Below, one piece after another: positions 20,368 through 64,000 of a stretch of 64,000 bases of DNA. The notes beneath the pieces were generated by a model that had not been told where the DNA came from, made no database searches, and was given only the letters and a program-made list of their open reading frames with translations. This stretch comes from Amphiscolops sp. MND2022 (Eukaryota): positions 64,976,001-65,040,000 of the forward strand of contig OZ076415.1 in NCBI GenBank assembly GCA_964187785.1. Reading direction: 5' to 3'. The position numbers were made by a program, and so were the translations under genes. The stretch's first letter is position 1, and every line of letters begins with the position of its first letter.

Positions 20368-20521
20368 TCAGTCATCCAGTTGACACAAGAGGGCGACCCC
20401 TCTGTTGACCCAATGGTTGGGGTCTCTTTTAGAGGGCAGGTCAATCATTAGCAGGTAGTTGGTGGAATGACCCGTAGTAGACAGGACTCCCCTTCTTTCT
20501 GTGGTTTTGTACAGGGGGCAG
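20368..20521 (-). CDS. DNAH12: Dynein HC terminal exon (CPLYKT...[11 protein letters not shown])
   Basis: gactcatag| acceptor, phase 2, TGA stop at 20370-20368. Confidence 0.92.
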
Positions 20522-44500: not shown

Positions 44501-47500
44501 CACTTTTGTGCACTCCAGACCACCTTATAAGGAAATGAAAACAAGTCAGATTCACATTCAAACTTTCGAAAGAACGACTTATCCTCGACAGTACGCTGAG
44601 AAAGTGAAACATTGACTGAAAATTAGCAAATTTTTTTCAAAGCTTCATTTCTTCACAAATAATAGCCGCAGCACAAATCGGTTTTGTGATCCTGAAAGCC
44701 CTTTACCTAATCTTTCAAATTCACATTAATTAGGCTGGGAGTTGCCAGGCCTTTCCAATGCCGGTCGAACTCTTAGCTGAAGCTTCACTGAAAAAACTTG
44801 CAATTGCGTTTTCAATGGTAGCCTAATGTGTTACTAGAGAGGGACAGTAACTTAGCAAACAATTGTTCAGTTATTGAGAAAAGTCAAAGTTTTGAAAAGT
44901 ATTTTTCTGCAAATTTTCACCTTTTTTCTACTTACTTTTTGTCATAATGATACAAGTAACAACTCACCCCAGTTAGTCCAATAGATTGTCGATCCAAAGA
45001 CAATTTTTCGTTTTCCTATATGTTTTTTTGTGTTTCGTAATTTTTTATTGATTGCGAAAAAAAATCGGTGTCTTCATTTGAGGATGAAATCACTGTCGAG
45101 GTTGATGTTGTGTTCGGCGCCCAGACAAAAGGGCCACAGACAAAAAGGCTTCCAGACAAAAGGGCCAAAAAAAACAGACAAAAGGGCCACAGACAAAAAA
45201 GGCAAAAAAGCCGACAAAAGGGCCAATATGCATGGAAGTGGATTTATTTGAAGAGGTTAGCATATTTGTTGCATTTAGATTCCTTGTGAACATATTTCAT
45301 GTGGTATTTTAAGCAAAATTATTTTGGCCCTTTTGTCTGCTTTTTTGGCCTTTTGTCTGTAAACCCTTTTGTCTGTAAGCCTTTTTGTCCGGACATGATT
45401 CTGTCCAGTTAGTGAACGTGATCAACTCACTGTGCTTGAAGAGTTGTTTGCCTAACAGGAAGTCCAGAGAGGCGTCTATGTCCTCTCCTATGTTTTCCAG
45501 GAGGGCTGGGTGCCCGTTCCGGATGGCAGTCTCCAGCTGCAGGTTGAAATCCTTGTCACCCAACTTGAGGATGGTCAACTTGTTCTCCTGCTCCAGACTC
45601 CGGATCCACTGGTTGGCCTGTGACTGTGGGTCTATCATCAAGGGCCTGGAACCAGGGATGTTGATTGGTCAAAAAAAATAAACCAAACTGTCTTCGAAAA
45701 AGTCGTACAAAAACGAAACGTTTTCAAGGGTGGGGTGAACCTTTTGGGGTAAAATGACTTTCTTGACTGAAACAATCAAGAAAACTCTCAACAAATGTTT
45801 TATTGAGAAGAACACTACCGAAAATTCCTAAAGGCGATTTTATAACTGGAAACTTCAAAAAAAACGAAACAGCGAACCTCTACTGAAAAGGGAAAAAAAG
45901 TAAAAAGTCGCACCACAGTGCCGAAAAAAAACAATATAAGAATTTTTTAGACTCTCCTCTACGATCATCAAGCCTTAAAATTTTGGTCCAGTGCGGGACT
46001 TGAACCCACGGACTCATGCTTCCCAGGCACAGTCACCCCAGCGCTTCTATTCGCTATTAGCACAAATTGGAGAAAAAGATTTTTAAAATTTGAAATGCTA
46101 GGACTGATACATTTCGTTATTTTTTCAGAAAACAAACAAAAAATGGTAACCTGATTCGTCAAAAAATCAATCAACCTGATTGGCTGATGAATAAACATTA
46201 TCCCCGAAAGCAAAATTGTTCTGCAACTCAAAACAATAAAGGTAAAGAAGGAATGAAAACCTGCCTGCCGAGAACTCAACAGCCTCTTACTTGAAAGAAA
46301 CAACATTTTTTCTTTAAATTGACCGAGATGTCCGAAAAACCGTTGACCTCGAATTATAAATAAGTTGCGCCGAAGATCGTAACCTCTATCATAAGCAGAG
46401 GGTTGGGAGTTCGATTCTCGATACCGGCAATATATTTTTTCCATAAAAAAACAATGATGCAACTGTTTCATCAATAACCAGAGGGTTGAGAGTTCGATCC
46501 TCGATATCAGCAGTATTTTTTTTTCAACTGGACCAACCATCTGCGACTGTTGTGGACCATGACCCCGTTCTGCACAGAGAAGTGGTCGGTGGGCAGTCCG
46601 TGGATGTTCCACTCCCTGATGGTGATGGGGTCCCCCAAGGTGTCCTTCATGTCGTACTCGGTGGTGCAGGGAAGTGCGTGGCCTCTGCACTCCAGCTGCC
46701 ACGTCTGCACCGTCTCCTCCCGGTACCCGGCCGTGAACGGGCCCAGGTAGGTGATGATGCCCGCACTCAGCAGGATGTCTCCGTGCAGGTTGATGAAGAT
46801 ACCGTGGAACTTCCTGGCAGCTTTGGTCCATCTGGGAGAAAAAAAATAGGAAGATGAACTCTTCCCTTGTCCAAACTGATTGAACTTTTCACATGTTTTT
46901 GAAGGTTGTCAACAACTTTTACCGTGATTATCTAAAATTCTCACGGAAATTTTCATGTGGAATTATTTCTATGTTGCATGAAACTTTTGTCAAACTCTTT
47001 TTAAAGAAGTATTCTAAATTTGAAAAATTTGCAGGGTTCAATATGCATCAGTTGTATTTTTACATGCAACTGAGACGTCAACATGAGTATTCACCGCTGA
47101 ATATCAATAGTGAAAAAAGTCTGAGCTCTCTTTTCAGCTTTTTTCAGTTTCCATGTCACAGCAAAAAAAATGATGTAATTCAAAAAAGGGAATCTTTTGA
47201 TATTTTTTTTCACATCAGAAAATTACGCACACAGAAAAGGATATCATTTTTAAAATACAGCGAAGAAAACTAGAGGTGGAGAAAACCTCGCATAGTAGGT
47301 GAGTCGCGCTCGTTAATTTGTCGGTTCGGTTAAAGAGAAATCATGTTAAAACTGTCACTTTGTGATGTAAAATCACGAAATGAGAGATGGCTCAGTGAAG
47401 AAACTGTTCAAGTTCAGGGCGTCATCATATCGAAAATATCACAATTAATTCTTGAGTTTCGCAAGCTTGGCAATCATCGGAAGAATGTCTATCAAAGTTC

Positions 47501-50500
47501 GAGTTTTTTCTTCCTTAATTAATTCTATGAAAAAATGCATCGGCTCATTTTATTGTCACATTTAAGGTTGCTTAACATCACTAGAAGGGGCTTATCTTAA
47601 GTTGTGAAGCAATTTGAAGTCACTTGAAAAACCTGAACTTTATTTAAGTACCTGTCTTTTTCTCCACCCAGTCCAGATATGAGTTTATCGGCCCTGCTGA
47701 GTTTCTTGGCACAGAGGTCCACTTCCTTTTCCAGCCCGTTCTTTCGCTCCTCTGTGACCTTGAGCTGGTCTTGCAAGGCGGTGAGTTTGTCTTGCACCAG
47801 CTTCAGTTCGTTCCTCTTGGCGTTGAGGGAAGCCATACAGGCAGCCAGATCCCCCTCTGCTTGGGCCAGTTTGGCCTTCTTGGGGGCGACTACTTTTGAG
47901 ATACGTTCGTACATCTCGATTGCCAACACCTAAGGACACATTCTGCAAAATGGATAGAAGAGCTGCATACTTTTGCAAAGTATTTGGCGAGTTTCCACTT
48001 TGCAAAAGTATGCTGCTCTTCTATCCATTTCAAGATAGAAGACTATATAATCTTATAATCTTATATAATCTCTTATAAAATTAAGATTCTCTTATTGCCA
48101 GACAATAACTTTGCTTTAACGAGTTTTCACCCCAAATCTTCCTCAAAATTTTTCCATAGTCCATAGTAAAAAATGATTTTTGTTAGTGAGAACCTTTTCT
48201 ATTACTATCAACTGATATCCATGTACATCAGTTGATACTTATAGAAAAGATTCTTACCAACAAAATCAACACGAAGCCAGTTTATGTTTAGGCTATAGCT
48301 GTGGTCTCGGACATCACTTAGAGGAACAGAAACATGCCAAGGTGTTGACAAACAGTAGAATTTTAACATATCTGAAGCCTAAACATAAACTGACTTCGTG
48401 TTGATTTTGTTGGTAAGAATCATTTCTATAAGTATCAGCTGATGTACATGGATATCAGTTGATCGTAATAGAATAGGTCCTCACTAACAAAAATAATTTT
48501 TTACTATGGACTATGGAAAAATTTTGAGGAAGATTTGGGGTGAGAACTTGTTAAAGCAAAGTTATTGTCTGGCAATAAGAGAATCTTTCATTAACCCTAA
48601 AGAGCCCAGTGGTGCTTTAAAGCAGCCTACCTTTTTTTCCAAATTCTGATTCCTTTTGCCAGTGGCCCATTTTCTCTAAGACAGTTTTTTTCAACAAGTA
48701 ATTGGTACATAGATTGATTTGAATGGCACAAGCATTAGGAAAAGGGAATATGTCTCCAAAGCTGAGAAAAATGCTTTTTTTTGCACAAAAAATAGTTATA
48801 TTTTCTCAAAATTCAGTTTTTGACGAAATCGCGTTTTCTCAAAAGTCTTTGATTAGTAGAAAAAACCAACCAAATATCGTGCCACAGCAAGCCCTGGTGC
48901 AACAAACCCCTATAATATTCTGTTGTTACTACAAGCCCCCGCGCAGCGGGCCGCACGAAGTGCTGAACTGCCGCGAAGCGGCGGTACCGGAAAAAGAAAC
49001 TAAAACTCTGGAGAAGCGGCGACAGGGGCTCACCTGAGCAAAATGAAAGCCCAATACCAGACCTTTCAAACGCGCTATAGTTAGTTTCTCTGGTACGCGT
49101 AGTTGTGGAGATGATGATTTGAAATTTTTCATAAAATTTTTGTGAAAACTTTTAAAAACGCCCGGGTCAATTGGGGTTTAAGAAGTTAATGATAGCTTAT
49201 TCGGCAAAAAACATTTTGGGATGTTTTTCCATCCATTCCCAACAAAAACAGCATATTCATATTCAGTAGCTTAAGTTGTCAAGCGATTTTGGGATAAAAA
49301 TAATTATGGTAGTTTTAGATAATAAAAATCCGTAGATTTTTAAACCTTACAAACAACGTAATGATACAACTGAAACATGAAAGTGGTAAAAACCACATTT
49401 GTTCTAATATTCTAAACCACATTTGAGGTTTTATCAGAAACTTTGTCGTTAGGGGCGACTACATTTCGTGGGGGTAGTTTTCGTAGAAGAAAATCAGTGT
49501 TTGTAAAATCTTCAGTTGAATTGATTCAAATCTACAATACCAGCAAATTTAGCTAAGTATTGAATTTCCCACAAAATTAAGCAAAAGGTTTCACTAACCA
49601 TGCTGACTTTCTCGTAAATCGTTGACTCAAAAGTGAAATTACATAACCTACGTTAATTGTTAATCATCACAACATCGATTGTTTCATTGAAAAGTCATTC
49701 ATGAGTTTCTTGAATGACACACTCCGAGCGGGGTTACCAGGGTTACATCCTTACTGTTCATCCTTGGGCACAATAAGGACTAATTTTTGTATTGGCCGAG
49801 ACAAAAGTGTCTTGGATCCGTCTTTACTCACAACTTCAACTTCCACATCTCTCACAAGATTATCACGTCCAGGGTAGACGTTTTTTACAATGCCAATCTT
49901 CCAAATACCTCGAATTGCAATTTGATCCTCTAACAAAACTACATCGCCGGCTTGAACGTTCTTCCGTTATTTTTTCCAGGTTTTGTAGTAGGCCATTTGA
50001 GGCAAGAAAGACTGCTGCCTTTTCTTCCAGAACGAATTCATAATAGTCTCAACTAGCTTATGTCGAGCCATCTTTTCTGTTTTGACATGGATGAAAGGCA
50101 CCGATTGATTCATTGTTCGGCCAAGTAGAAGACTATTGGGAGACAAATAAAAACCATCTTCGGGTTGAGTAGGGTGTCTGCCAATAGGACGGTCATTGAG
50201 CAAATTAGCTGTCTCAAATAGCACTGTCTGGAATTCGATAAGGGATAAAACTTGACTACCAATTGCGAAGAACAAACATTTTTTCACAGAAGCGATCAAT
50301 GATTCTGCACATGCTTGACGCCAAGGTGCACAGCTTGGTGCAAACTCCCATCTAACTCCTTTGAAAAGCAGTTCTTTTGACAAAATATCAGGATCGAGAA
50401 CTCGATAAACACTTTGGAGTTGCCTGTTTGCACCAACCAATTGTGTGCCAGAATCTGAATGAATCACTTCGGGGTAACCTCTTATAGTAACAAATCTTCG

Positions 50501-53500
50501 GAATGTTTGCAAAAATTCTTCTGTTGAGTAGCTCAAAACAATGTCCAAGTAAACTGCTCTGGAAAACAAACATGTAAAAATAGCCGCATACACTTTCCTT
50601 ACAGTTGATTTTCTGAAGCAATCCTTAACTTCATACGGTCCAAAAAGATCAACGCATATGCTTAAGAAAGGATATGAAAGTTGAGTTCTTTCATCAGTAT
50701 GTGCTCCCATTAACTGAACAGCACTGGTTTTGTTGAAAATTTTGCAACCGGTGCATTTCTTCAGGATATATTTTACTAGTTTCAACAAATGAAAAACCCA
50801 AACTTTTGTTCTGACTTTGCTGGCTGTGTGTAAAACTCCACCATGTCCCATTTCGTGAGCATCTTTGATCAAGAGTTCAACTGATTGCGACTTTGGAATT
50901 AAAGGCACTGTCTGGTGAATCCTCCGCCCCACATGAATAATTCCATTCGGGTCTAAAAAAGCACCCAATGAATCAAATTTCCCAGCTTCAAAATCTGTCA
51001 TAATCTTGTTTTGTTCAGACCTCACTATAAATTCCCAGGCTTCTTTCACTTTTTCGGCATTTGGCATATCTTTCACTTTCCTGAACGATCTTGAAGAACA
51101 AACTGACAACACTCGGGCAACAGTTCGAACAAGTGAGTTAACATTCGAAAATCTAGTAGTGTCAAATTCCACAAATGGAGTTGATTTTCTTTGATTAACT
51201 AGAAAACTTTTGCAGGGAATAACTTCAGGCAGTAGCTCTATCGCATACATTTTTTGTTCAAGGGGCCATTCAAACACAGGATTTTTGAGAAATGAAGGTC
51301 CTGTTTGCCATTGGCTATCAACTCTGAGTTCTTTCGGAGAAGAACCTCTAGAAATTAAATCAGCTACATTGACTTCACCTGAGACCCAATAGAAAGCGTT
51401 CCGGTTTTCAGTTTCCTGAATTTCGCCCAGTCTCACTCCAGTGAAAGAGTTGAAACCATAGGAGTCCTTTTGTATCATTGCTCTTACAACTTCAGAATCA
51501 CAAAGGAACTTCACATCTTTAAAATTGAGTCTGGAATGTTTGAAAAGAAACTTTTTTAATCTGACAGCAACTAAAACACCACACAATTCCAGTCGTACAA
51601 TAGATATTTGCTTCTTCGGGGCTAGTCTGCTTTTAGCAACAATTAACCTAGCTTCATTAGTCCCGTTTGAGAGAGTCCATACCGCGTAGGCAACTGCCCC
51701 ATATGCATCTTTGGAGGAATCACTGAATATGACAAGTATTGGATCACCAACGCCAATGTCATACGGTCTGATTCAACGCACAAACTCAATTTCAGTCATT
51801 TCAAAAAGTTCTCGAAACAACAAAATCCATTCAGTAGTGAGTTCATCCGACAAGGCATCATCCCAATCAGAAGCTTCCTCTGAATTCCTTGTTTTTCGCA
51901 TCAGTTTTTTAGCTTTTACAATGAATGGTGTTGCTAATCCTAAGGGGTCGTAAGTGGAATTGACTTGACTCAAAGCTTGTCGTCTTGTTAAATTGTCAAT
52001 ACCATCTTTTTTGAGATCCTCTGCAGCATGGTACGATTTGATGGGTTCTTTTCCCGATTTTGGCTTGATGACAATTTTCGACTTGAATACAAAAACAACT
52101 TTCTGCAAATTCCAGTAAAGTCCCAAAACTTTTTCATGAGCTGCGAGACCTACTATATCAGATGGCGGCTCCTTATGACCGGAATAAATCCAGTTTTTGA
52201 TTTTAAAAGATCCTTCAGCTAACATTTCATCAATTCTTTTAGTTCGTTTGGTGGCTACGTCATGATCATGGACGCTGTCGACAATGTCATCCATATAAGT
52301 TGAACTTAGAACAACCTTTTTTTCTTCCAAGTACTCGTCATTTGCCATTTCCGTTGTTTTCCTTAAGGCGAGCTAAGCAATTGTTGCTGCGGGTCTGTCA
52401 CCAAAAGAAACTACTTGCATCATATAATGGTCTGGTTTATCATCTTGTCGGTAATCTCTCCACAAAAAACGATGTGTCTGTTGATCTTCAGGATCTAGTC
52501 GCACTGTATGATACATTTGTTTCACATCGCCGATATAGCCCACAAAATGTTCTCTAAATTTTACTAGAATACCCAAAAGATTGCCCAGTAGATCGGGTCC
52601 TTTAGCCCAATACTCATTTAAAACGTGACTTTTGTAATTTGCAGAAGCGTTGAAAACTATTCGACAAGGAGTAGAAGCTGAATCTTGCTTTAGTACTTCA
52701 TGATGGCTGATATAATGCACTGGACCGTCATAATCTAAATCTTCTTTTGACATCTTCTTCGCGACTCCTCGTTCAATCATGTCGTCGATTTGACTTTGGT
52801 ACGTTTTCGCATGAATAGGATCCTTCATGAGCCTCCTTTCAGTAGTGAATAACATCTTCTCTGCAACGTGAAAGTTATTCGGCAATTGCTTTGAACTTTT
52901 TATCCAAGGGTACTTTGCAGTCCAAACTTTATCACAAATAGTCAAACCCTTTTCAATTATTTCTAACTCCTTTTGTTCCTTGATTGAAAACTCAGAGGAA
53001 CCAAGAGGACAACTACCACATTGGCAGTTGCCACATTTGGGGTTACAAGCAATTCCTAAGTTTTCAACGTTGTAGAACTCTTCCATAGTGATAGCTGTCT
53101 GCACGAAGTTAACCTTGGTGAAGGTATAGCCAGACGAGTGGCAGCTACTACCACCAACACATTTACCAAAAGTATTTTCAAACAAGACAAAGTTATTCTT
53201 TCTTTTCACAGGCACAGGATGATACTGAACCACGTTCAAACCTAAGAGTAAGCCAATATGAGCTTTCTGACTATCTTGACAAGCAAAATCTTCCGGAAAC
53301 AGTTTTTTCTGCAGTTCTGTATTGTACATATTTCTAGAAATTTCGTCAACGCCGTAAGCTTCAATTTGCACTAGGTTGTGTTTCCGGTCCTTGATTTCCA
53401 TAACAAAGAGATTCGTTTGTTTTTTGACAACTCTGCCCAATGTTTCCATGGTAATCGACACAGGTTTTCCTTTCAACTTCAAGTTATTTGCTACATTATT

Positions 53501-56500
53501 GAGAATTAAAGAAACTGTAGACCCAGAATCCCATAGGGCTATTACTTCTTGTTTGTTTGAGCCAGAGTTGACTTCAATAGGCATAACCTGCGGTAAACTT
53601 TTTTCCTGATTGTTTGAAACATCACATTTCGCAGAAAAACCGTTTGTTTCATTTCTGTTGCTCAAAAAATTATCATCGTGTAAAAGAAGATGATGATTTT
53701 TACCGCATTCAGCTCTGCTGCAAACTTTTCTAGTGCGACAAGTTCTGGATGTGTGCCCGGCGACGAGACAATTGAAACAAGCACGATTAGCTTTAACAAT
53801 ATCAGCTCTTTGCTTCGCATTTTTGTCCAGGAACAATCGACAGTCTTCAGTTTTATGAGTTCCACTCGGATGAAGAAGACACTTGTTTTTCGAAAAATCA
53901 GCTTCTTCACTTTTAGAAATGGTCATTTTCACATTTCCTTTGATATCATCTCTGGTACGTTTCGTCAAATTGATCTCATATTCAATCACCATTTTTCTTT
54001 CGAGTAAAAACTTCAAGAATCCGGGAAACTTATCCCTTTTATCAATTGTACTCTCTTTGTCATAAATTCGTTCTATCCATTTTCTTCTCAATTCGTCTGG
54101 TAGCTTTTCTTCAAAGATTGAAATGATTGTACTATTTTTGATTTCTGATTCACGTCCCAAGTACTTCAGTTCTAGATCAGCTTTTTAAATAATATCAATA
54201 AAATTCAACAGACGACGTCCTTCATTTTCTCGCACAGGCTTGTAGTGTTTTATGTCGTTCAACACAATTTCAACAATTTTACCTTCATCACCATACCGTT
54301 CTTCTAAACGTCGCCACATTTCTTTTAAATCATCACTCATATTCCTCACTAAACTTTTTATGTTATCTGGTAAAGCGTTTCTCAGAGCGTATGACACAGT
54401 AGCTTCATCCTTTATCACATTTTCAACTTGCTTTTCAAAATCCTTTCTGAATTGAGGCCAGTCTCGGCAATTTCCGCTGAACTTCGGAAACTTGAGCTTT
54501 TCCATGTGTGTAAACGATTTTCTGTCTTGCAAAACATCACCGCCGCCGTTTTCCGACTGAAAAGGTTCTGAACTGGAGGCGGAATACATCATATCAAAAA
54601 ACTTCGTTGAAATTTCCTTGAGTTCGTTGTTTTCCTTTTCGAAAGTTGTCTCCTGGTTTACTAATTCAGATAGAGAATCAATGACAATCTTCACTTCTTT
54701 GAATTGGTTATCGAAGTCGTATTTGACGTTTTTCAAAACTCGTTCTGTAACTTTTGGAAGGTTTTCAAACGATTGACAAATGTTGTGTAATCGATTAACT
54801 TCAACCCTGTACTTTTCTTTCAATTTTCTAACTGTCTCATTTATTTCATCTTGACGTTTCAAATCATCTGATTCCGCAAGCTCTATAGTTTTCTTTTCTA
54901 GTTCCTCTTTTTTCCCTTTTCATTTTCTCCTCTTTCAGCAAAATGTCGAGTTGGCACTTTTTTGATCTTAGTTCATGAAATCGGTTTTCAGGCTCGTCAA
55001 TCCAAGAAATTTCATTATCGTACATTTCTTGGTCTAAATTGAGCAAATACTCATTTTGCTTTTCTTGAAGAAGATTCCATGTATTCACAATGTCGTCAAA
55101 ACACAACTGGTTTTCTTCGGCAGATTTTTCAACTTCAGATAGAAAAGTCTCATACCTGTTACATGCTTTGGTAAAGTTTCTTAAAGACAAACTTCTAGCC
55201 CTCTGTTCCACTTGGACTTGAGAAGGGGTTGTCATGATTTGAATTTGCCGTTAGGGGCGACTACACTTCGTGGGGTAGTTTTCGTAGAAGAAAATCAGTG
55301 TTTGTAAAATCTTCAGTTGAATTGATTCAAATCTACAATACCAGCAAATTTAGCTAAGTATTCAATTTCCCACAAAATTAAGCAAAAGGTTTCACTAACC
55401 ATGCTGACTTTCTCGTAAATCGTTGACTCAAAAGTGAAATTACATAACCTACGTTAATTGTTAATCATCACAACATCGATTGTTTCATTGAAAAGTCATT
55501 CATGAGTTTCTTGAATGACACAGAAACTGACAGAAACATTTAAGATAATCAACCAAATCATCGTTTTCGGAACATTTTGCGAAGGTCTAAGCGAGCGATT
55601 TATAAGCGAACATTTCCTCGTTCTAAGTCTATAAAAGGTATACCCAAGCTACTACGAGAGAACATTTTGTAGAAAATAATCGGGTCGAAAAAAATATCCA
55701 TTTGAGTTTTGATAATGTTTCAGCGTACAGAGAAAAATTGGAAATATGGTGAAAAATTCAAGGATGTAAAAATCATGTAAATTTTGCATGCATCTGAGAA
55801 AAACCTGGCAGCAAAATTAGAGAGAAATGCAATCTCACCCATCGGCAGAGTCCTTGTGCGGCTGAAGAGGCCTTGGCGACCACGTCAGGGGAGAAGTCAG
55901 GATTGGTCATGAACTCCCTTCTGATCCTGTCCATAGAGGCCTACACCAGCGCGATGACGTCAGCGATGACGTCAGAGATTATCACAAGACCGGATTCAAA
56001 CTCTTCTACTGTGGGAAAAAAGTTTCAAATTTCTGAAAATTGTAATTTTTATTGCCTTTATATTCAGTTTTCCGAGACATGATTTACTGTGAAGTGACTT
56101 TTTGCTCAGTTCAATAAAAAAATTCAAAAGATACCAATTTTGCGTCTCTTGTTGATATAAAAAAATCGGATAACTGATACTTTTATATTCTGAAAGGGGT
56201 CTACAAACTTTAACAGTTGCTATAGATGTCACTAGGGGAGCAAATAACGTTTAGGGAATAACGTCTAAGAAATTCGGGAATAAAATCTAAAGGAATAAAG
56301 GAATCTAAAATTCAATGTTTTAAGATAGGGAATGATCATGACTTGGTTTTAGACTAAACAATGTTCTTACTCTGAGGTGGAGGCTCTCTGCTGATGTGGA
56401 TTTATATAACACACGTGACAGGACTCAAGATATTCAAGATTCCAAGACAAAATCCAAGATCTAGCCAAGATATTCAAGATCCAAGATCTTTCCAAGATAT

Positions 56501-59500
56501 TCAAAATTTCAAGATTTCCCTAAGATCTTGGCAAGATATTCAAGATGTCAAACGCTGGGCGTTATTCCCGTTTTGCATTTAGATGTTACTCCTTAGACGT
56601 TATTCCCGCTCGCCAGATGTCACGACATGGAGTGTTAAACAAAATTGATTGACTAGATCGGATTACTGATTCCTGTTTGAAATATATTTCTATTCATATT
56701 GATATTCGTATCTGGTTGAAGTAATCCCTGGTTGATGTTGTCCTTGTCGAAAGTCTTGAGGGTGTTGAGGAAGTTCATGTCTCCCAGCAGCTTCTTCGAG
56801 GGGCCCCAATAGCTGTTGACCTTGGCAGTGCCCCCGTCGGGGTCAGCCACTTTCTCAGGGGGGATGTCTTTCAACACACAAATGGCCTCCATCACCAATT
56901 TGACCCCTGAACAAACAGTTTCTTCAAATGCTAATTTTCCTTGAAAATCAATCAGGTATGGTTCCGATGAATTCAATAATTAGACAGCTTTTTTGACAAG
57001 GATTGGAACAATTTTGCGTGTAAATGTGTTTCTGAACAAAAATTAAGTTCATAACTATGATTTGAAAATGCTGAATAATCATTCCAAAGAAACCATTGAA
57101 AAATTCCACTTTTTTTAAATTTAAAAAATGCGCAAAAGTTGTTGAACAAGCTTTTGCACAAAAAAAACGTTTTTTCTTGAGTATAAAAATTCAAGCTACT
57201 GAAGTCAGCTACTAGCAACTAATGGATCCTAAGTGAAACTTTAAAGCACTCTTTAACCCAAACGTTTGTTTCAAAATCATATCTATTGCCGAAAGTGAAG
57301 AGTTTGAAGAAACTGAACCTATTGGAGGGTTTTTCATGCTCTTGATGATCGTAATGTCCGAAGGCTTCAAAATGTCCAAACAACGAGTCGCCTCCTCCAA
57401 AATTGGAACTGCTTCTGCTAAGTCGTTCTCGCACTCGGTTTTCAGCTCTTGTGCAGCATCTGCGTATTCATTGGCTACCGACTCCTCTCGTGTAACGTTT
57501 TCTCGTTTCGTTTGAACTCGGTTGCTCTCCTGGAGCGTCGTCATTAATTCTCCCACGTTAAAAATCGGAATTTCAGTCAAATTTTTTGTCTTGATTAAAC
57601 CTATCATTTCTCTAGATCTTATTTATTATGCAAATGAAACGAAATTTACGAACACGAGGATACATACTGCAGTTTTAAGTGCCATGGCTTTCATAGATGA
57701 AATTGTGAGGAATCTAGCAGAATCATGTAGTTTTGTGTACTGCATCATATTACTCCACGTACGAGATCAAATGGCTTTACTTACAGGAAAATATAAAAGG
57801 AAGGGCCTTAAAACATATGTAAACGTGTTAGATTCAAGTCCAGTATTGTTTTAGAATCAGTTCTAATCATTCCAAAACAAGACGGGAACGTCTAAAGTCG
57901 GCGCTATATCTAAGGCTCAAAAAGCGCAAAAAATTTTTTTTTTAAATTGAAATTTTTGAATTTTTTTCTTTCAGAAAATGTCGCATAGTGCCGAAAAATG
58001 TAAAAGGGGGGACCCTTTGGGCTTTATTAACATATATTCTGTTGCAAAATATCAAAAAACTCGAAAGGGGGACTCTTTTGATACATTAAAAAAATTTTTA
58101 AAAAAAGTCGCACAATGCAGAAAAAAAATCAAAAGGGGGGACCCTTTAGTCTCGTCCGGTTTTGTAGGCTACGGTAAAATAGTAAAAAATGAAAGGGGGG
58201 GACCCTTTTGCACTAATTTCCGCTGACCGGACTTGGCCTAATGGTAGTAGTTTTAGTAGTTTCGATTGTAGGAAAAGTGGCCCAATCAGAGTGAGATTGT
58301 AGTCTGACAAAAAAAAACTAGCCACAGTAAGTGTCGGGCACTTTTCACTAGAAAAGCGCCGACTAAAAAACAGGATTAGACGTAGCCTAGTAACAACTCA
58401 ACTTGGTTCCATGTTTGGCTTTGCATGCTTGGAATTGCGTTGATCTTATGGTTCCGTGTTTTATAATATTTGGGTTTGTTGTTTCATCGGCATAATATAA
58501 CACTCATGCTTTAGTGAGACGTTTTAGTCCTTTTAAAATATAAAATATCTCAAAATGACATTTTTAAACTTGATGAGACTTGGGTAGTCACCTGAAATTC
58601 CTCCAACTTTAGTTGATTTTTCCTATGTTGAACATTTGTTTCCCTATAAAGTGTGCCATTTTTCCCTTCAATGAAAAAACATTGCAGTGCCACATTTAGA
58701 AGTTTACATAAAATAAAATTCGTGGAGACAGATTTTGACTTATTTAATCAACCAACTCTGACCATTTTCATCAGGTTTTTCATCTTTTTTTTTGTCCTGC
58801 TCCGGTGAAAAATATTGAACAGAGGTTTTCGAGACGTTGTTGGAATTTTTTAAATAAAAATTTTCATAACTGGACTTTGATTTATTCGCAAAACCGACGG
58901 TTGTAACAACGCCCCTTGACTGTGTGTTCGGCCATTTTGACAGCTTCTCGCGTCGTTTCCATCAACTTCGGCTGCAATTCTTTCAAGTTTTTCTCCATTT
59001 CGGCAACTTGGGAAGATGCGAACGCCAGTTTTTCTAATCCCACCTCGTATCGTCTCTTAGCCTTCGAGACTTCTTCTCGTTTCTTGGCCATCAGTTCTTT
59101 GAAGGTCAAAATGAGTTCTCGGAAAGAAGTCGGAGTTACGTAATTGTATCTGTTTTGTTCAGCTAGCAATCTAAAACGTGCAACTATTACGACATGCCTT
59201 ACTGAAGGCAAGTTACCGAAGAGATGAAAGATGTGATAATCCTGAAATTGGTTCCCAGAAACGAATGGAGCCATCATTGTAATACTGTGAGAGAGTGACC
59301 TTGACTCTCGAACTGACCACTGTAAAAGAACATAAATTGGAGCAAGTTGTAAATAAATGATAATATACATAATGAATATTATTTACAAACAGAACTGTAT
59401 AAAATAACAGAAGAGATTCAGCCATTCACCACATGGTCTTTATCAAATACAGTATTGCTCTACATTCAACCTTCTTTAATTTAGTCGTTGCACGTCGTTA

Positions 59501-62500
59501 ACAAAAACCATGGATCCATGTCCAGAAGAAACGATAAGGAACTACTCATTAGGACAAAAAGCACATAGGAAAACACGCCCAAAACGGAATAACATCAATA
59601 GAAAATTAGGATAACGTAATCAGTTAGGTTCACATACCACTAGTGCCCCAAATGCACAAGCGAAGCGAAGTGGAGCGACGTGCCACTACTGGTCCAACGG
59701 CTGATTTCGACGGAAGCCGACCGGGAGTGCGCGAAGCGCCCAGTAAAGAGGAAGACCAAGTTCTTCCTCTAAAGTTAAGAAGCTGAGTCATACAACCAAT
59801 ATAAAAACTGTGAGTGTTATAAAAATTAGTTCTTCTACCAAAATCTCTTATGGGATGTTCCTCCTTTTTCAATGGGGTGTTTTTTTCCTTTGGGTTTTTT
59901 GTGGGCGTTTTTCCTTGTGTGTTTTTTTCTATAACTGATGGATCATAACTTCCAGGCAGACTATTACTAATCAGTTGGATTGTGAATTAAAGAAGGTTGT
60001 CTAAATCATTCAATTCAGCTTTATCACTTCAGTTACTACTGAGTTTTTCATATCATTTTGATAAACGCGGAGATTCATGTGAAAAAGCTTTAATGCAACT
60101 TCTCACCTCACAAACTGTTTAAACTCCTCCGCTCTTGAAAAATTAAGGTCCTGATGATTTTACAAAAATTACTCGAATCGACCAAAGGTATTTCGAAAAA
60201 ATCCGTCAAGATGGCGATTTTGCTATTGTCGAATTGGCTGGCGAATTATGAATCAACCTTAATGTCAAAACCTTAATCTTGATGCTAGTTTTTAGAGTTT
60301 TTGCATAAAAATTCGATGTCTTCTAACCCAGGAAACTTAAATCATGGCGCTAACCTGCTAGATAGGACCACGGCTGATTCATGGAAAGTGAGACTAAGAC
60401 TGGTAATGGTAGACCGGTACATGTCATCTATGTTGGCATCACTCAGTATTTTGGAAGCCACCTTTTCCAACGCTTCTTGGGGCCACTCCTGAAATTCATT
60501 GTCACTTTAACTTTCTACTGTCACCTTGAACGACTGTGATTACTCGGCGAGCGGGAATAACGTATAAGCAATAAATAAAGTCTAAATGCAAAACGTCTGA
60601 AATAATGTCTGAAGCCAAGTCATGCTCATTCCCTATCTTGAAATGTTGCTTTTTAGACCTTATTCCCGAAACAACTAACCCTAATTACCATCGTGGTACG
60701 TATTTTCACCATTCAAGATCTGCAAACTTCTAAAGGCACCAGCTGACCGTATGGTAAAGAAAACTCTTGAATAAGATTTTCATACATTATTACATAGCTT
60801 TGCACGCATTTGCACGGATTGTTGACTTGATCTCTCCAAAATCAATAAGACGGGACCAAAAAATCAAAAAAGGAGCGCAAAATTTCCGTTTTTCCTGTTT
60901 TGTTGTGTGGCCACTTTATACCACTGAGGACAAGATTGGATCAAAGCGGCCCTAGCATGTTTTGAAACAAGCTGAAATGCACCCAGAGACACGACGCGTG
61001 CAAAGTTGTTTTGGTGCAAAGTCCGGAGCCAGTGCGGCGCTAGCGGGCCCCCAGCCCAGCCGTCTGAGCCGTTTGAAAATCAAAATGAAAGCCCTGATTG
61101 TCTTCTTTCGAACGCGCTAAAAATTGTTTATCGGACTTTTTTGGATGAATCCCGAAAATTCATACTTCATTCCGGGTTAAGGTGTTATTCCTTAGACGTT
61201 ATTCGCGCCTCTATGATAAGTCCTATTCCGTGTATTTCCTCACTTTTAGGAAGATCAGATTAAACTTTGAAAATCCGATGACAAACAGTTATTTCGGGCC
61301 ATTATGTTAAGGATATTAACAAGCCTGAAGCCTAACGTTCAGTAAAACAGATATTCATGCCATGGTTAAACCTTAGTTCTGATCGACAAAGTCCTTGAAT
61401 CGAACAGTTGGTAAAACTCAGAGAATTGATGGTAACCGCTACGAGAAAAAGCAATAAAAACGTTATTTTTTTCTTCAACCCACGTATAACGGGATGGGGG
61501 ACGAAAATCATAATCTGTGTTGGTTGCGTTTTTTTACAAATTCTGCCAACTCCACGATCTCCACCCACTTCACTTAGTTACTTGACTATTTTAGTTACTT
61601 GACTATTTTAGTTACTTGTATTTAATAATGCGTTTTACTAAGGAGGAGACAGAGGTTCGAAAACAAGCGCTCCCATTTGTCCCAGCACGCAATATCCGAA
61701 CTTTTGACGTTATATTCGAAGTTAATTCTGTTTTACTACAGAGGAAGCTGAGATTCCAAAAATTGCGCCATATCCGAATTTTGATTTTATATCCGAAATA
61801 AATTGCGTTTTACCAAGGAGGAGGTAAAATTTTGATTAAGTGTCTATTGTTAGCCAATTGAAAGCGGAAGGTATCCTGGTGCATAGCGGGCGTCTTGTAT
61901 ATCTTGAAATGTGAAATGTCCCCATTGAAAAGTTTTTCAGGGAACACAAACCAGTTTTTAAACAGCGCTTTTGGTACACAAACGTGCCCGACTTCTATAA
62001 TGGCAAGTTTTTTCTTCCTTTTTGTCAAATGACAATTTCCCATGCAAAAGCGTTTTTCCTTTGATTTTTTCGGTAATATGAGACTTTCCCCCGGGGGCCC
62101 TTTTTTGCGGCTTTGTGAGACGTTTTTTTTGAGGTATCCAAAGTGTCCCCTCTTCAATTTTTTTGATATTTTGCAACAAACTGGATTTTCAGAAAGTCCA
62201 AAGGGTCCCCCTTCTACAATTTCAAAAACTGCGCGTTTTTAGCCTTGGATATAGCGCCGACTTTAGACGTTCCCGTCTTGTTGCTTTTTTGTCAGACCAC
62301 AGAGCTCACCATGTATGTACCACTTTATAGTACAGACTTTAATCGGTTTAGGGGGCACCCAGCGGTCGCCGGAATTTGTTTCGTGCATTTGCAAAACCGG
62401 ACGAAACTGAAGAGTTCTGGACCCCTTTTACATTTTTCGGCACTGTGAGACTGTTTCAAAATTCTCATTTTCGTCTGAAATTAGGTTTTCTCAATATAGA

Positions 62501-63282
62501 ACTACAAAAATATATTTTTCAAAACTATCCGAAATTTTGACGTAATATCCGGATTAAAGCGCAATAACCGAATTTTTGACGTTACTATCGAGCTATATTG
62601 CGTTTTACTGAGGAGGAGGCGGAGGTTCGAAAACAGGATTTTTCCATGAAAACCTCCTACGCATATTTCAGAAATTGCGTTTTTGAGCCTTAGATATAGC
62701 GCCGACTTTATACGTTCCCACCTTCGCGCCACTTTCACAAGTAGCACAACATGGTGCTGAATATTCTTCCTTGCTTACGAGTTTCTTCTTTTCAATCATT
62801 TTCGGAGGGTCTTGTTGAACAAAGCTAACCAATCAAGTTGTAATAGCTTAGTGTTTTATAACTAATACCAAGTCTTGTTGTATTTAACCACTAAGCAACC
62901 AACTAATAATGATTAATACTCTTACCTTGAACCATATGATGGTACAACACGACACGAGAGAGGGAAACTTGCGTAATCGGTTTCTGAAAGACTGTCCGAT
63001 TGGACTGAACCCAATCAACACGTGAAGATTCGTTTTCACCCGAGAGATGAAGAAGTTGAACAACTCGTTGGCTGTGAAATCGGCATTTTTCACTCCGTCT
63101 TGAGCGTCTTCGCGTACGAGTTCAATAATCTCGTGTCGTTCGTCGGCTGGAAACACGTTCGGCACTTCACCGATGTTGATTAACGACTCGATGTCTTCCA
63201 TGAAGCTGTCGTCGGTGATTTGCGTGTCGGTGACCAATAGCATTGAAGGTTCGTTCAGAGCTCCGGCCGACTTCATCGCAAC
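20368..63282 (-). CDS. DNAH12: Axonemal dynein heavy chain, single-headed inner-arm class, DNAH12-like; 3' part, 26 exons; 5' part outside window
   Basis: Phase-consistent exon chain with dynein motifs: [156 protein letters not shown] and terminal QLDD resemble DNAH12 as recalled; DNAH3/DNAH7 not formally excluded. Dynein heavy chain identity is near-certain; the confidence reflects the paralog call. Confidence 0.8.
20961..21113 (-). CDS. DNAH12: Dynein HC exon ([12 protein letters not shown]...MEY)
   Basis: tttttttcag| acceptor; best donor TACAG|ggatgg (GG); GT alternative would end the exon at 20967. Confidence 0.82.
21622..22182. mobile_element. piggyBac-like MITE
   Basis: TTAA on both sides, TIR CCC(T/G)AAACGACCCA; inverted homolog at 48595-49176. 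Confidence 0.85.
22265..22497 (-). CDS. DNAH12: Dynein HC exon (NWLEKG...FFFTQAF...[12 protein letters not shown])
   Basis: ctttcctag| ... AGC|gttagt, 233 nt, phase 0->2. Confidence 0.9.
22914..23118 (-). CDS. DNAH12: Dynein HC exon (LNALIRGSL...SLKPLSSY...FFQ)
   Basis: ctttcttag| ... CAG|gtacac, 205 nt, phase 2->0. Confidence 0.9.
23302..27519 (-). mobile_element. Ty3/Gypsy LTR retrotransposon, decayed and internally deleted, in a dynein intron
   Basis: LTRs 23302-23535 and 27289-27519 (TG...CA, about 93% identical by eye); 5-bp TSD ATTGC (23297-23301, 27520-27524); PBS TGGCGCAGTAAGCAAGATT next to the 5' LTR (tRNA-Ser-like); PPT GGAGGGGGGGTA; gag CCHC knuckle [14 protein letters not shown], protease FIIDTG, RT ([20 protein letters not shown]), integrase KTDRGSAF; order PR-RT-IN; frameshifts and stops. 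Confidence 0.95.
27960..28063 (-). CDS. DNAH12: Dynein HC exon (LLPLFDI...[12 protein letters not shown])
   Basis: ctattgcag| ... CAA|gtagga, 104 nt, phase 0->2. Confidence 0.9.
29534..29790 (-). mobile_element. tRNA-derived SINE
   Basis: A-box-like TGGTGTAGTG, B-box GGTTCAAATCC, core GGGCCTTGAGCAAGTCC, (TTA)n tail at 29534-29555. Confidence 0.6.
29895..31225 (+). mobile_element. HINE family B copy carrying a nested family A copy
   Basis: 5' TTATTTTCCGCCCA at 29895; 3' GGGCGGAAAA-hairpin CCCGCTGGTCCGCGGG-CGTCTTGTT ending at 31225. Confidence 0.55.
30332..30821 (-). mobile_element. HINE family A copy
   Basis: AACAAGACGGGAACGTCTCAAGTCGGCGCT...AGTCGGGCTCTTTTCTTAAGAAAAGCGCCGACTAAAAA. Confidence 0.75.
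32149..32406 (-). CDS. DNAH12: Dynein HC exon (TMPDNQ...LQENADLT...IISK)
   Basis: cattacag| ... AAG|gtatgg, 258 nt, phase 0-0. Confidence 0.88.
32752..32988 (-). CDS. DNAH12: Dynein HC exon (EFMCEY...CNYGGKVTD...MNALK)
   Basis: gacgttcag| ... AAG|gtgaac, 237 nt, phase 0-0. Confidence 0.9.
33016..33224 (+). mobile_element. HINE family B copy
   Basis: subTIRs TTTTCCGC/GCGGAAAA, internal TAGTTACTTGACTATT tandem units, 3' hairpin then CGTCTTGTT; embedded B-box-like GGTTCGAAC. Confidence 0.7.
34059..34196 (-). CDS. DNAH12: Dynein HC exon ([13 protein letters not shown]...GWNIPY...IHQLR)
   Basis: catttcag| ... AGA|gtaagc, 138 nt, phase 0-0; not in the ORF track frame. Confidence 0.9.
34237..34630 (-). 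mobile_element. HINE family A copy
   Basis: AACAAGCCGGGAACG ... GAAGCGCCGACTAAAAA. Confidence 0.7.
35192..35360 (-). CDS. DNAH12: Dynein HC exon (LWLTSYPT...FFEIDCEDK); 3' boundary uncertain
   Basis: ttttctcag| acceptor; donor either AAA|gcaaca (end 35192) or CCG|gtcaat (end 35177), both phase 0. Confidence 0.8.
36115..36337 (-). CDS. DNAH12: Dynein HC exon (ALTKF...SLGQGQG...LQNCHLA...KEFR)
   Basis: caatgcag| ... TAG|gtgcag, 223 nt, phase 1->2. Confidence 0.9.
36610..36806 (+). mobile_element. HINE family A partial copy
   Basis: TTTTGAGCCTTAGATATGGCGCCGACTT...TTCCCGGCTTGTT terminus. Confidence 0.65.
37039..37189 (-). CDS. DNAH12: Dynein HC exon (AAA6: LLMQVRK...SPGADPMT)
   Basis: tttaaacag| ... 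CAG|gtactt, 151 nt, phase 0->1. Confidence 0.9.
37721..37865 (-). CDS. DNAH12: Dynein HC exon ([10 protein letters not shown]...IRPDQ)
   Basis: cttcgcag| ... CAG|gttcta, 145 nt, phase 2->0. Confidence 0.88.
38240..38404 (-). CDS. DNAH12: Dynein HC exon (SRNEIDKEE...KSWEEI...KDFK)
   Basis: cttttttcag| ... CAA|gtgaga, 165 nt, phase 2-2. Confidence 0.88.
38942..39132 (-). CDS. DNAH12: Dynein HC exon (FSLSWF...CINVLL)
   Basis: gttactag| ... ACT|gtgagt, 191 nt, phase 0->2; missed by the ORF track frame. Confidence 0.88.
40315..40822. mobile_element. hAT-like MITE
   Basis: TIR CTGGGGTGTGGAA, 8-bp TSD AACATTCA (40307-40314, 40823-40830), AAACCGT subrepeats. Confidence 0.85.
40946..41068 (-). CDS. 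DNAH12: Dynein HC exon (TAEETQ...QVYQ)
   Basis: ctgtttcag| ... CAG|gtatgt, 123 nt, phase 0-0. Confidence 0.9.
41084..42409. mobile_element. Mutator/foldback-like element with 15-bp tandem subterminal repeats
   Basis: 9-bp TSD CAGAACCAC (41075-41083, 42410-42418); (AGAAATTTCGTCGTC)x8 at left and inverted copies at 42288-42402. Confidence 0.8.
41718..42265. mobile_element. CMC-like MITE nested in the foldback element
   Basis: CCCT(A/T)GTTGAA termini, 2-bp TSD TA; same family as 17405-17953. Confidence 0.75.
42869..43066 (-). CDS. DNAH12: Dynein HC exon (ERPDLEE...SKKQQ)
   Basis: ttcacag| ... CAG|gtaaag, 198 nt, phase 0-0. Confidence 0.9.
43298..43906 (+). mobile_element. HINE family A copy
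   Basis: TTTTTAGTCGGCGCTTTTC...AGCGCCGACTTTAGACGTTCCCGTCTTGTT. Confidence 0.75.
44336..44523 (-). CDS. DNAH12: Dynein HC exon ([10 protein letters not shown]...GITVAK)
   Basis: ccttataag| ... AAG|gtaact, 188 nt, phase 1->0. Confidence 0.9.
45121..45392. mobile_element. Foldback MITE with AGACAAAAGGGCC subrepeats
   Basis: Tandem units at 45121-45225 and inverted units at 45325-45392; no clear TSD. Confidence 0.6.
45431..45645 (-). CDS. DNAH12: Dynein HC exon (AAA5: PLMIDPQ...QLFKH)
   Basis: ggttccag| ... ACA|gtgagt, 215 nt, phase 2->1. Confidence 0.9.
46538..46831 (-). CDS. DNAH12: Dynein HC exon (WTKAARK...NSRRW)
   Basis: ttctcccag| ... ATG|gttggt, 294 nt, phase 2-2. Confidence 0.9.
47652..47929 (-). 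CDS. DNAH12: Dynein HC exon (stalk CC2: VLAIEMYER...GLGGEKDR)
   Basis: tccttag| ... CAG|gtactt, 278 nt, phase 0->2. Confidence 0.9.
48083..48587. repeat. Long foldback, ~210-bp inverted arms with ~80-bp spacer (probable MITE)
   Basis: 48083-48295 is the near-exact reverse complement of 48377-48587. Confidence 0.85.
48595..49176. mobile_element. piggyBac-like MITE (inverted homolog of 21622-22182)
   Basis: TTAA|CCCTAAA left end, GGG|TTTAA right end, shared interior (CGGTACCGGAAAAAGAAAC, CCTTTCAAACGCGCTATAG). Confidence 0.75.
49443..55522 (-). mobile_element. BEL/Pao LTR retrotransposon, near full length, recently inserted, coding region disrupted
   Basis: Direct repeats 49443-49721 and 55245-55522 (3 substitutions plus 1 indel by eye), flanked by GAAACT (49437-49442, 55523-55528). 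Single gag-pol frame 55235-49751: knuckles [14 protein letters not shown], protease LWDSGS, RT YMDD, RNase [15 protein letters not shown], integrase [22 protein letters not shown]-terminal [18 protein letters not shown]. Confidence 0.96.
49751..55235 (-). pseudogene. BEL/Pao gag-pol polyprotein, disrupted
   Basis: One frameshift at an A-run near 54910 and four in-frame stops (54185, 52373, 51773, 49967); the ORF-track pieces ending 54862, 54160, 52348, 51586 and 49936 share one frame. Confidence 0.9.
55839..55940 (-). CDS. DNAH12: Dynein HC exon ([10 protein letters not shown]...GLCRW)
   Basis: ggtgtag| ... TGG|gtgaga, 102 nt, phase 0-0. Confidence 0.88.
56235..56614. mobile_element. Mutator/foldback-like element related to 634-1180, with nested CMC fragment
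   Basis: Direct repeat AGATGTCAC (56224-56232, 56615-56623); GGAATAACGTCTAA/TTAGACGTTATTCC subrepeats; related pieces at ~60546-60690 and ~61180-61230. Confidence 0.65.
56728..56906 (-). CDS. DNAH12: Dynein HC exon (MTBD: VKLVMEAIC...DKDNINQ)
   Basis: tgtttgttcag| acceptor; donor CAG|ggatta (GG), 179 nt, phase 1->0. Confidence 0.88.
57319..57529 (-). CDS. DNAH12: Dynein HC exon (ESNRVQ...KSMKNPPI)
   Basis: gctccag| ... ATAG|gttcag, 211 nt, phase 0->1. Confidence 0.9.
57876..58370 (-). mobile_element. HINE family A copy
   Basis: AACAAGACGGGAACGTCTAAAGTCGGCGCT...GAAAAGCGCCGACTAAAAAA. Confidence 0.75.
58915..59170 (-). CDS. DNAH12: Dynein HC exon ([16 protein letters not shown]...EHTVK), stalk CC1
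   Basis: cgttttag| acceptor; best-register donor is AAG|gggcgt (GG); GT alternative would end the exon at 58921. Confidence 0.85.
59552..59931. mobile_element. Foldback-like element with GC-rich GCGAAGC core
   Basis: Imperfect TIR (G/A)GA(C/A)AAAAA.CACA.AGGAAAA.ACGCCC; core begins CTAGTGCCC as in 634-1180; no TSD seen. Confidence 0.5.
60355..60488 (-). CDS. DNAH12: Dynein HC exon ([11 protein letters not shown]...LSSR)
   Basis: aatttcag| ... CAG|gttagc, 134 nt, phase 0->2. Confidence 0.9.
61484..61898 (+). mobile_element. HINE family B copy, 5' end missing
   Basis: TTAGTTACTTGACTATTT tandem units and 3' GCGGAA...GCGGGCGTCTTGT. Confidence 0.6.
61950..62720 (+). mobile_element. Two tandem HINE family A copies (61950-62282 and ~62420-62720)
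   Basis: AGCGCCGACTTTAGACGTTCCCGTCTTGTT at 62253-62282 and a degenerate version ending near 62720. Confidence 0.65.
62926..63282 (-). CDS. DNAH12: Dynein HC exon (AAA4: VAMKS...CCTIIWFK)
   Basis: ctctttaag| ... AAG|gtaaga, 357 nt, phase 0-0. Confidence 0.9.
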
Positions 63283-64000
63283 CTTAAAGAGAATATCTTT
63301 CAATCAATGAACGATGCTAGCTCTGACAGTTGTAACTGCCCATGCTTGCACTCCACCGCAAATGACCGATGACCACCAGTGGATCACCAGTGACCACCGG
63401 TGGAGGCAACTTTGGACCAGTGGTCACTTTTGTCCACCGGTGCTCCACCAGTTGAGACAACTGGAATTTTTGTTTTAGAAAAAAAAACGATGACTTTCGG
63501 GAAATTAATGAAAATGTAATCTTTGAGTAGCATCGTTTCAATATTGAGTCCGAGGGGTTACGTTAACAACATTTGTAGCATTTTAAGGAGTTTTCGCCAC
63601 CGCGTGTCTCGAAGCCGCGACGTAGCCAATGCTGCAGATGAAATGAAGGTCAGGCAAAACAAACAAAATTTAGGAGCTGATAGCGGAAAGGTAAAATGCT
63701 GGACTGTAAACAAATAGATTACAGGTTGGCGTCACAATTCTTGCACAAATTTTTTGGACCATCAGTTACCACGGAAACAGCGGCAGATACCATCTCAGTG
63801 GTCCAAAAGTGGTACTTGGTGGGATCATCGGTGACCACCGGTGAACTGTAGTTGATCGCCAACCCGAGTTTGTCTCAGTTGGTCAAAGCAGACTATAAAA
63901 ATATATTTTTTGAGGTTTTGTTTCTCAATATGCTGTGTCTTATGTGAACTGATTTTTTTTATTCAAGACAACCTTCTTATCACTATGAATACCATAAAGT

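Follow-up and report, generated by a model that had tools for sequence, protein, structure and literature searches.

Gene model and features of the locus

The window analysed here is a stretch of 64,000 nucleotides of contig OZ076415.1 (positions 64,976,001 to 65,040,000) from Amphiscolops sp. MND2022, assembly GCA_964187785.1, and all coordinates given below without a contig or locus name count from its first letter. Its minus strand carries the C-terminal part of a DNAH12-like inner-arm dynein heavy chain gene. Within the coding region for the microtubule-binding domain of this dynein lies an intron that appears to begin with GG. The original prediction for this locus, made from the letters of the sequence, had already proposed such a donor. 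The features on which the argument rests are the following (a slash marks an exon-intron boundary here and throughout):

20371..63300, minus strand: dynein heavy chain, inner-arm, DNAH12-like, C-terminal ~1,650 codons in 26 exons (tblastn, Pfam)
56728..56906, minus strand: exon 5, microtubule-binding domain, ending ...TFDKDNINQ with last bases CAG (aligns with DNAH12 2636-2693, E 7.6e-22)
56726..56727, minus strand: GG at intron positions +1/+2, non-canonical 5' splice site in the context CAG/GGATTA (sequence, reads)
55941..56727, minus strand: predicted intron 5, 787 nt, GG...AG (sequence, join enumeration)
55941..55942, minus strand: acceptor AG, ggtgtAG/GCC, part of an in-frame TAG (sequence; no variant in reads)
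55839..55940, minus strand: exon 6, ...GLCRW, ending at the canonical donor TGG/GTGAGA (aligns with DNAH12 2698-2730; weak Pfam MT match)

The exon model, which runs from 63300 to 20371, was derived by tblastn with full-length dyneins that themselves came from a profile-free search. Pfam matches to AAA_8, the MT stalk, AAA_9 and Dynein_C follow each other in the expected order. The best match of the encoded protein is DNAH12, and it is collinear with the DNAH12/7/3 group over AAA4, the stalk and microtubule-binding domain, AAA5-6 and the C-terminal domain. Joined by the inferred junctions, exons 1-20 amount to 3,972 nt, a multiple of three, giving 1,324 codons without any stop. This model is collinear with residues 2346-3667 of P0047, a dynein of 3,994 amino acids, at 49% identity and nearly equal length. 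Exons 22-26 contribute 282 further open codons, up to the natural stop. Of the 25 junctions of the gene, 20 are GT-AG and three are GG-AG (exon ends 58915, 56728 and 20961); the remaining two are one that is either GC-AG or GT-AG (35192) and one that was not placed (exon 21/22). The open 1,324-codon model requires the junction between 56728 and 55940, which is thus predicted to be used constitutively.

The junction between exons 5 and 6

On the minus strand the donor side reads gacaaggacaacatcaaccag/ggattacttc, with 56728 as last exon base. Exon 5 has a canonical acceptor of its own (tgtttgttcag/G) and ends with GAC AAG GAC AAC ATC AAC CAG, followed by GGATTACTTC. This is the exon end that had been proposed (...DKDNINQ, AAC CAG, then ggatta); only the start of exon 5 needed correction, to 56906 (phase-1 acceptor) in place of 56907. 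Exon 6 starts in phase 0 at 55940 with GCC TCT ATG GAC AGG, again as proposed, and is preceded by GCGCTGGTGTAG (...gctggtgtag). Read-through past 56728 yields 24 codons and then the stop TAG 56655-56653. The statement that no phase-0 GT or GC precedes this in-frame stop proved correct: the stretch 56727-56653 lacks GC, and the single GT found there, at 56666-56665 (ATCA/GTAAT), has phase 1 (179 nt from exon 5, 1 nt carried over and 61 nt). The predicted intron 5 starts with GG, and no solution with GT or GC is available in its place.

The register of the junction is given by protein comparison. Residues 1-58 of exon 5 align with human DNAH12 2636-2693 and residues 3-35 of exon 6 with DNAH12 2698-2730, and N, Q, A and S occupy DNAH12 2694-2697 without a gap. 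The same is seen with DNAH7, DNAH3 and the Chlamydomonas inner-arm chain 8glv_Me, in agreement with the DNAH12 register that had been suggested for the GG-AG junction. Three paralogs of the same genome have DKDNI, four residues and then M or I in a single uninterrupted exon. This four-residue spacing from I to M, common to four solved dyneins and three paralogs, points to an mRNA that reads AAC CAG/GCC TCT. The four linker residues themselves are not conserved.

Upstream of exon 6 there is a second possible acceptor:

AG 56009..56010, minus strand: strong-looking, unproductive upstream acceptor, ttttttcccacag/TAGAAG (sequence)

Because the in-frame TAG at 55943-55941 stands directly before exon 6, no acceptor further upstream could be productive, and this includes the one at 56009-56010. 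The pairing of this acceptor with ATCA/gtaat, which had been dismissed on the same ground in the original prediction, is indeed blocked. The conserved M (ATG 55934-55932) allows no acceptor further downstream either, and the sole AG in the permitted span is 55942-55941. A phase-0 acceptor needs a phase-0 donor, for which the candidates near the right length start with CA, GG or TT. The GG at 56727-56726 is the only G-initial phase-0 donor that preserves the four-residue linker.

All stop-free donor/acceptor pairs lying no more than about 90 nt from the exon ends were also enumerated and scored against three dyneins. The GG-AG join obtained a score of 820, and the best GT/GC-AG join one of 593, at rank 1511. 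The only joins that equalled or exceeded GG-AG were cuts without AG and slid versions with the identical mRNA; as AGG is repeated at both intron ends, the cuts AG..GT, GG..TA, GG..AG and GA..GG all yield the same product. At 20 of the 25 junctions of the gene, GT-AG (GC-AG at junction 18) came within 0-19 points of the best join. The non-AG cuts AT..GC, TT..CC and CT..CT, which would give NQGS or NQGL+M, could mean that intron 5 is another non-canonical pair with a non-AG acceptor. Non-AG joins score 817-823, and the four linker residues, not being conserved, are permissive of NQGS or NQGL+M. However, such joins need both a non-G/non-GT start and a non-AG end, and an AG acceptor is compatible with each of the 24 resolved junctions of the window gene and with all junctions of a paralog described below. 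The other two non-GT donors of the gene are likewise G-initial after AG. We consider a non-AG acceptor very unlikely.

The 3-bp direct repeat AGG that flanks the 787-bp segment could also suggest that this segment is removed at the DNA level, by programmed elimination between the repeats. The DNA joint 56728-55940, however, is absent among the best 15 of 63 joints, and AG/G at both ends is the normal protosplice consensus, so that we give elimination next to no credit. A real GG-AG intron in this dynein is the probable explanation. More precisely, we assign a probability of roughly 0.8 to a genuine U2-type spliceosomal intron with GG as its 5' site (CAG/GGATTA...GGTGTAG/GCC) in an intact DNAH12-like axonemal dynein gene. 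Removal of 56727-55941 would join DKDNINQ to ASMDRIR and give the microtubule-binding domain back its linker of exactly four residues.

Base calls and haplotypes

The bases at both splice sites were checked in four short-read runs. These come from one sample, possibly the source of the assembly itself. None of them is recorded as RNA, and as their depth is the same over introns and exons, they are taken as DNA. Contigs of the runs cover 56565-57573, at a depth of 21-86, and 55800-56106. No other letter was found at 56727-56726 or at 55942-55941 in the contigs of the four runs, in which two haplotypes are represented. Reads with GT at 56727-56726 had been named in the original prediction as the finding that would overturn it, and the contigs have GG only. 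A contig of run X4 represents the second haplotype and differs at 56672, 56984, 57087, 57224 and 57527, and not at the splice sites. In the stretch covered, one haplotype difference is exonic and synonymous (57527, GAG>GAA) versus six intronic ones. The second GG donor (58914-58913) is also without variant in the contigs of the runs.

As GG is present in the contigs of both haplotypes, it is not a sequencing error. Nothing was found that speaks for an assembly or sequencing error or for GG as a rare allele of GT, except that all four runs derive from one sample, which may be the assembled one. With this sample, assembly error and heterozygosity are excluded and only a rare population allele is left. 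The four-run contigs over 56565-57573 show no difference at 56727-56726 and the second haplotype agrees, and we regard an erroneous base or a rare GT allele as extremely improbable.

Other GG donors and the paralog on contig C1

Intron 5 does not stand alone, GG donors being found at three of the 24 resolved junctions of the window gene. The GG donor at exon end 20961 (junction 25, tacAG/GGATGG) restores the conserved Y-x-CP, as Y-S-CP. For the one at exon end 58915 (junction 3, tcaAG/GGGCGT) there is a weaker GT alternative 6 nt upstream, with a score 30 points lower. The exon ends in AG at all three GG junctions (accAG/GG, tacAG/GG and tcaAG/GG). An A follows at +3 (GGA) at the 56728 and 20961 junctions, and the 58915 junction has GGG.

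As a control, 140 kb from contig C1 were submitted to the same join analysis. They contain a second, better conserved DNAH12-like gene, at G000:C1:88624000-88696000 (loci L016-L029), with one intron of 17 kb. The donor position of exon 6 is common to the window gene and this paralog (its junction A25). The paralog has no intron at the DKDNI site. In addition, residues 3197-3258 are matched twice in it, at the neighbouring positions 70986-71162 and 71203-71355 within the 140-kb stretch, and these may be duplicated or alternative exons.

The existence of this second copy raises the question of whether the window gene is splice-dead, as a gene or as an allele, through mutation of a GT donor to GG, and would then be a recently formed pseudogene or a duplicate of the C1 gene that is decaying. 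The window gene is the more divergent of the two DNAH12-like copies, with a per-exon identity to P0047 of 43-68% versus up to 86% for the C1 paralog, and the latter has canonical donors only. However, the 1,606 modelled codons of the window gene contain no stop or frameshift, and their length has been kept. For decay, the identical T>G change at +2 would have had to occur three times with no other damage in ~1,600 codons, which is very unlikely. The GG is moreover found on both haplotypes, with a synonymous change as their sole exonic difference. We therefore judge a splice-dead gene to be unlikely.

Spliceosomal components and possible mechanism

The 3' part of intron 5 contains a putative branch-point region:

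55959..55975, minus strand: two CTGAC motifs resembling branch points, arising from a perfect 12-nt tandem repeat; A at -20 and -32 (sequence, repeat analysis)

Between these motifs and the acceptor at 55941-55942 the sequence is free of AG. The intron ends with CTGAC(N17)TAG/G, that is, with an AG that has a branch-point-like motif 18-40 nt upstream. Judged by the yUnAy consensus, CTGAC is the putative branch point, and the spliceosome would take the first AG after it as the 3' site. The donor could form five of nine pairs with the canonical 5' end of U1, at -3 to +1 and at +3. Most likely, the spliceosome of this host would tolerate any base at +2 when the core of the site is strong, i.e. 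with CAG at the exon end, G at +1 and A at +3.

U12-type introns are known to tolerate several terminal dinucleotides, and intron 5 could be a minor-spliceosome intron with unusual termini. Its 5' end, GGATTACTT, does not fit the rigid RTATCCTT box, and the last 40 nt of the intron have no branch site resembling TCCTTAAC. A U12-type intron is most improbable.

The genome has 23 matches to U1 small nuclear RNA (snRNA), 21 of them above the Rfam cut-off, and in 14 the 5' end is canonical or deviates at position 11 alone. The U6 box is normal (ACAGAGA). Since U1 and U6 are canonical, a tolerance at +2 cannot be read from the snRNAs and would presumably reside in protein components.

Several observations weigh against a genuine GG-AG intron at this site. 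Both splice sites of intron 5 are weak by consensus, and the polypyrimidine tract is poor. A stronger acceptor, the unproductive one at 56009-56010, lies 68 nt upstream of the weaker one at 55941, and if it were used, the exon would open with a stop codon; this site may act as a decoy or yield an isoform subject to nonsense-mediated decay. A C at U1 position 7, which would pair with the G at +2, is present in none of the 23 U1 matches, and no mechanism for reading GG is visible. In the C1 gene, the closest paralog, about 35 junctions could be resolved and all their donors are canonical, which means that the trait is not uniform across genes. Finally, a genome search for a 33-nt pattern across the predicted spliced junction, with up to three mismatches allowed, found nothing, and a retrocopy with this junction is absent.

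Some further variation was seen among the U1 loci. Three of them (L014, L036 and L043, on contigs C13, C12 and C3) have three different bodies and a common unusual 5' end, ATATTTAAACCTG, and they are preceded by the same upstream 10-mer, tttaattgaa. Other 5'-end variants are ATACTTACCTT (six copies), ATACTAACCTG (three copies), ATACTTACTTG (one copy) and ATTCTTACCTG (one copy, L015).

Two other ideas on how intron 5 is defined were tried and rejected. The first was a pairing of the intron ends, in which exon ACCAG pairs with intron CUGGU in the minimum-energy fold; the overall z-score was -0.9, no better than chance. The donor-acceptor duplex of intron 5 has an energy of -17.2 kcal/mol, a value reached or surpassed by 18% of the duplexes formed when donors and acceptors of this gene are mismatched. 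Two GT introns score above every GG intron in duplex energy. From the comparison with mismatched pairs, the terminal pairing is not significant for intron 5. The second idea was an introner or transposon-derived intron. The ends of intron 5 are at single-copy depth and without terminal inverted repeats, and only an internal element is repeated:

56243..56608, no strand assigned: high-copy element resembling a miniature inverted-repeat transposable element (MITE) in intron 5, not part of the splice sites (repeat analysis, k-mer depth)

This MITE-like element has a perfect 16-bp terminal inverted repeat (56254-56269 and 56592-56607) and internal AAGATATTCAAGAT repeats. The k-mer depth inside it is 2e4-8e4 versus 55-85 in the flanks, i.e. 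300-1000x the single-copy level.

Comparison with known GG and GA donors

In the copepod Eurytemora affinis, GA and GG donors have an obligate AG at the exon end and almost always an A at +3, and they are constitutive and needed for full-length protein (PMC5714493). In large genes, about 10-12% of the introns have such donors, and the 5' end of U1 is canonical in this species (PMC5714493). The window gene resembles this system by its G-initial non-GT donors with AG acceptors, by the AG at the exon end, by the A at +3 and by a canonical U1. Three of its 24 resolved junctions have such donors, against none of about 35 in the C1 paralog. There are also differences. The ratio of GA to GG is about 6:1 in E. 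affinis (PMC5714493), while all three non-canonical donors here are GG. The copepod introns are lineage-specific gains, while intron 5 lies within one codon of a widespread canonical intron. Lastly, the copepod donors are backed by RNA-seq, while those described here are predicted from DNA and protein comparison.

An AG at the exon end and an A at +3 are also reported for GA-AG and other G*-AG introns of the tunicate Oikopleura dioica and of E. affinis (PMC7072748). Non-GT donors with such flanks are frequent in O. dioica, and in these flanks the window intron is alike. The Oikopleura genome is compact. The host of the window gene differs in having a genome of 1.07 Gb with introns of kilobase size, and it is not a tunicate. 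The latter is indicated by its mitochondrial COX1 gene (L001, G000:C1929), in which 11 TGA codons stand for Trp and AGR is found at a conserved Ser (FSLHL); this combination corresponds to the invertebrate code and not to that of tunicates. The COX1 protein is rather divergent, and the best public fragments are 87-90% identical to it. For a 535-aa exon of an outer-arm dynein of this genome, the named matches reach just 56-57% identity and come from insects and an annelid; the ESM Atlas lists Arthropoda as the commonest group, which is a weak hint of affinity.

In human, according to the figures of PMC4176328 as quoted in PMC5714493, GG and GA donors account for 0.006-0.014% of introns and are mostly alternative. 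Functional +2T variants in human (PMC12805630) are cases of U2-type splicing with a base other than T at +2. The human cases are like the predicted intron 5 in that a non-T at +2 can work when the rest of the site is strong. They differ in that three constitutive cases are predicted here in one gene.

GG and GA donors are thus already known in a copepod and a tunicate, and by testable sequence criteria the predicted window intron is of that kind. Since standard gene finders and spliced aligners do not accept a GG donor, they would truncate or split the dynein model. As the junction lies inside the microtubule-binding domain, a wrong model would alter a functionally critical region. If the prediction is true, one more animal that combines frequent G/GN donors with canonical U1 and U6 would lend weight to the view that tolerance at +2 evolves through spliceosomal proteins. 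Intron 5 could serve as a clean test substrate, being predicted to be constitutive, single-copy and without a competing GT.

Origin of the intron

The donor of intron 5 lies next to a short duplication:

56712..56727, minus strand: GGATTACTTCAACCAG, the 16 nt with which the intron starts, an imperfect tandem repeat (13/16) of GGACAACATCAACCAG, the 16 nt with which the exon ends (56743-56728) (repeat analysis)

A tandem match of this kind is seen at 16 of 63,968 window positions, and the empirical p is about 0.005 when periods of 8-24 are allowed. No comparable tandem copy was found at the 23 other donors of the gene. It follows from the tandem copy that the donor GG is a copy of the exonic G GAC. 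The 16-nt copy is followed by ATACGA, which differs from a GTACGA donor in a single base. The GG donor may have arisen by a duplication through which the splice site was displaced upstream. Together with the offset of one codon from a conserved intron, described next, this constitutes a testable idea of how the donor arose.

Four other inner-arm dynein paralogs inspected in the genome lack an intron at this site; one of them has a GT intron after FDK. A DNAH12-like gene of another species (L030:4270-5060, an ENA contig) has a canonical intron, CCA/GTAAGT...TAG/GTT, giving DKDNIP/VAIM. This intron has the same phase 0, the same linker and the same flanking exons as the window intron and lies one codon upstream. 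Among the best homologs, 116 short genomic open reading frame fragments were found, of which 36 have the L030 read-through signature, 35 are intronless and 22 have a GT after DK. Most simply, the window intron would be an old one displaced by 3 nt, with GG now at its start; an independent gain at an AG/G site is the less simple alternative.

One may go further and propose that this host represents a third independent lineage, next to Eurytemora and Oikopleura, in which T at +2 is no longer required by the major spliceosome, that an ancient and widely conserved intron has been affected instead of a newly gained one, that its GG arose from the 16-nt duplication of the exon end, by which the splice site moved, and that CAG/ATACGA is the old donor. 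We hold this scenario as a whole to be doubtful. Were it true, the duplication combined with relaxed recognition of +2 would provide a concrete route to non-canonical donors.

Additional observations on the locus

Two junctions of the window gene are less sharply defined than the others. The junction of exons 21 and 22 falls in a glutamine-rich, low-complexity and non-conserved linker (32180-32420 and 28060-28110), and a small exon may be lacking from the model there. Junction 18 (35170-35200) is either GC-AG, at gacaaa/GCAACA and with exact length, or GT-AG, at cagccg/GTCAAT 15 nt downstream and with five extra residues; homology gives no choice between these two options.

Intron 3 contains an extremely abundant repeat (57875-58393, k-mer depth about 1e6). 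Contigs of all four runs join 57887 to 58394 without this repeat, so that the sample also contains an allele with an empty site. This makes the insertion polymorphic, and it is probably recent.

Finally, the genome encodes a full set of axonemal dyneins, which argues for motile cilia or flagella.

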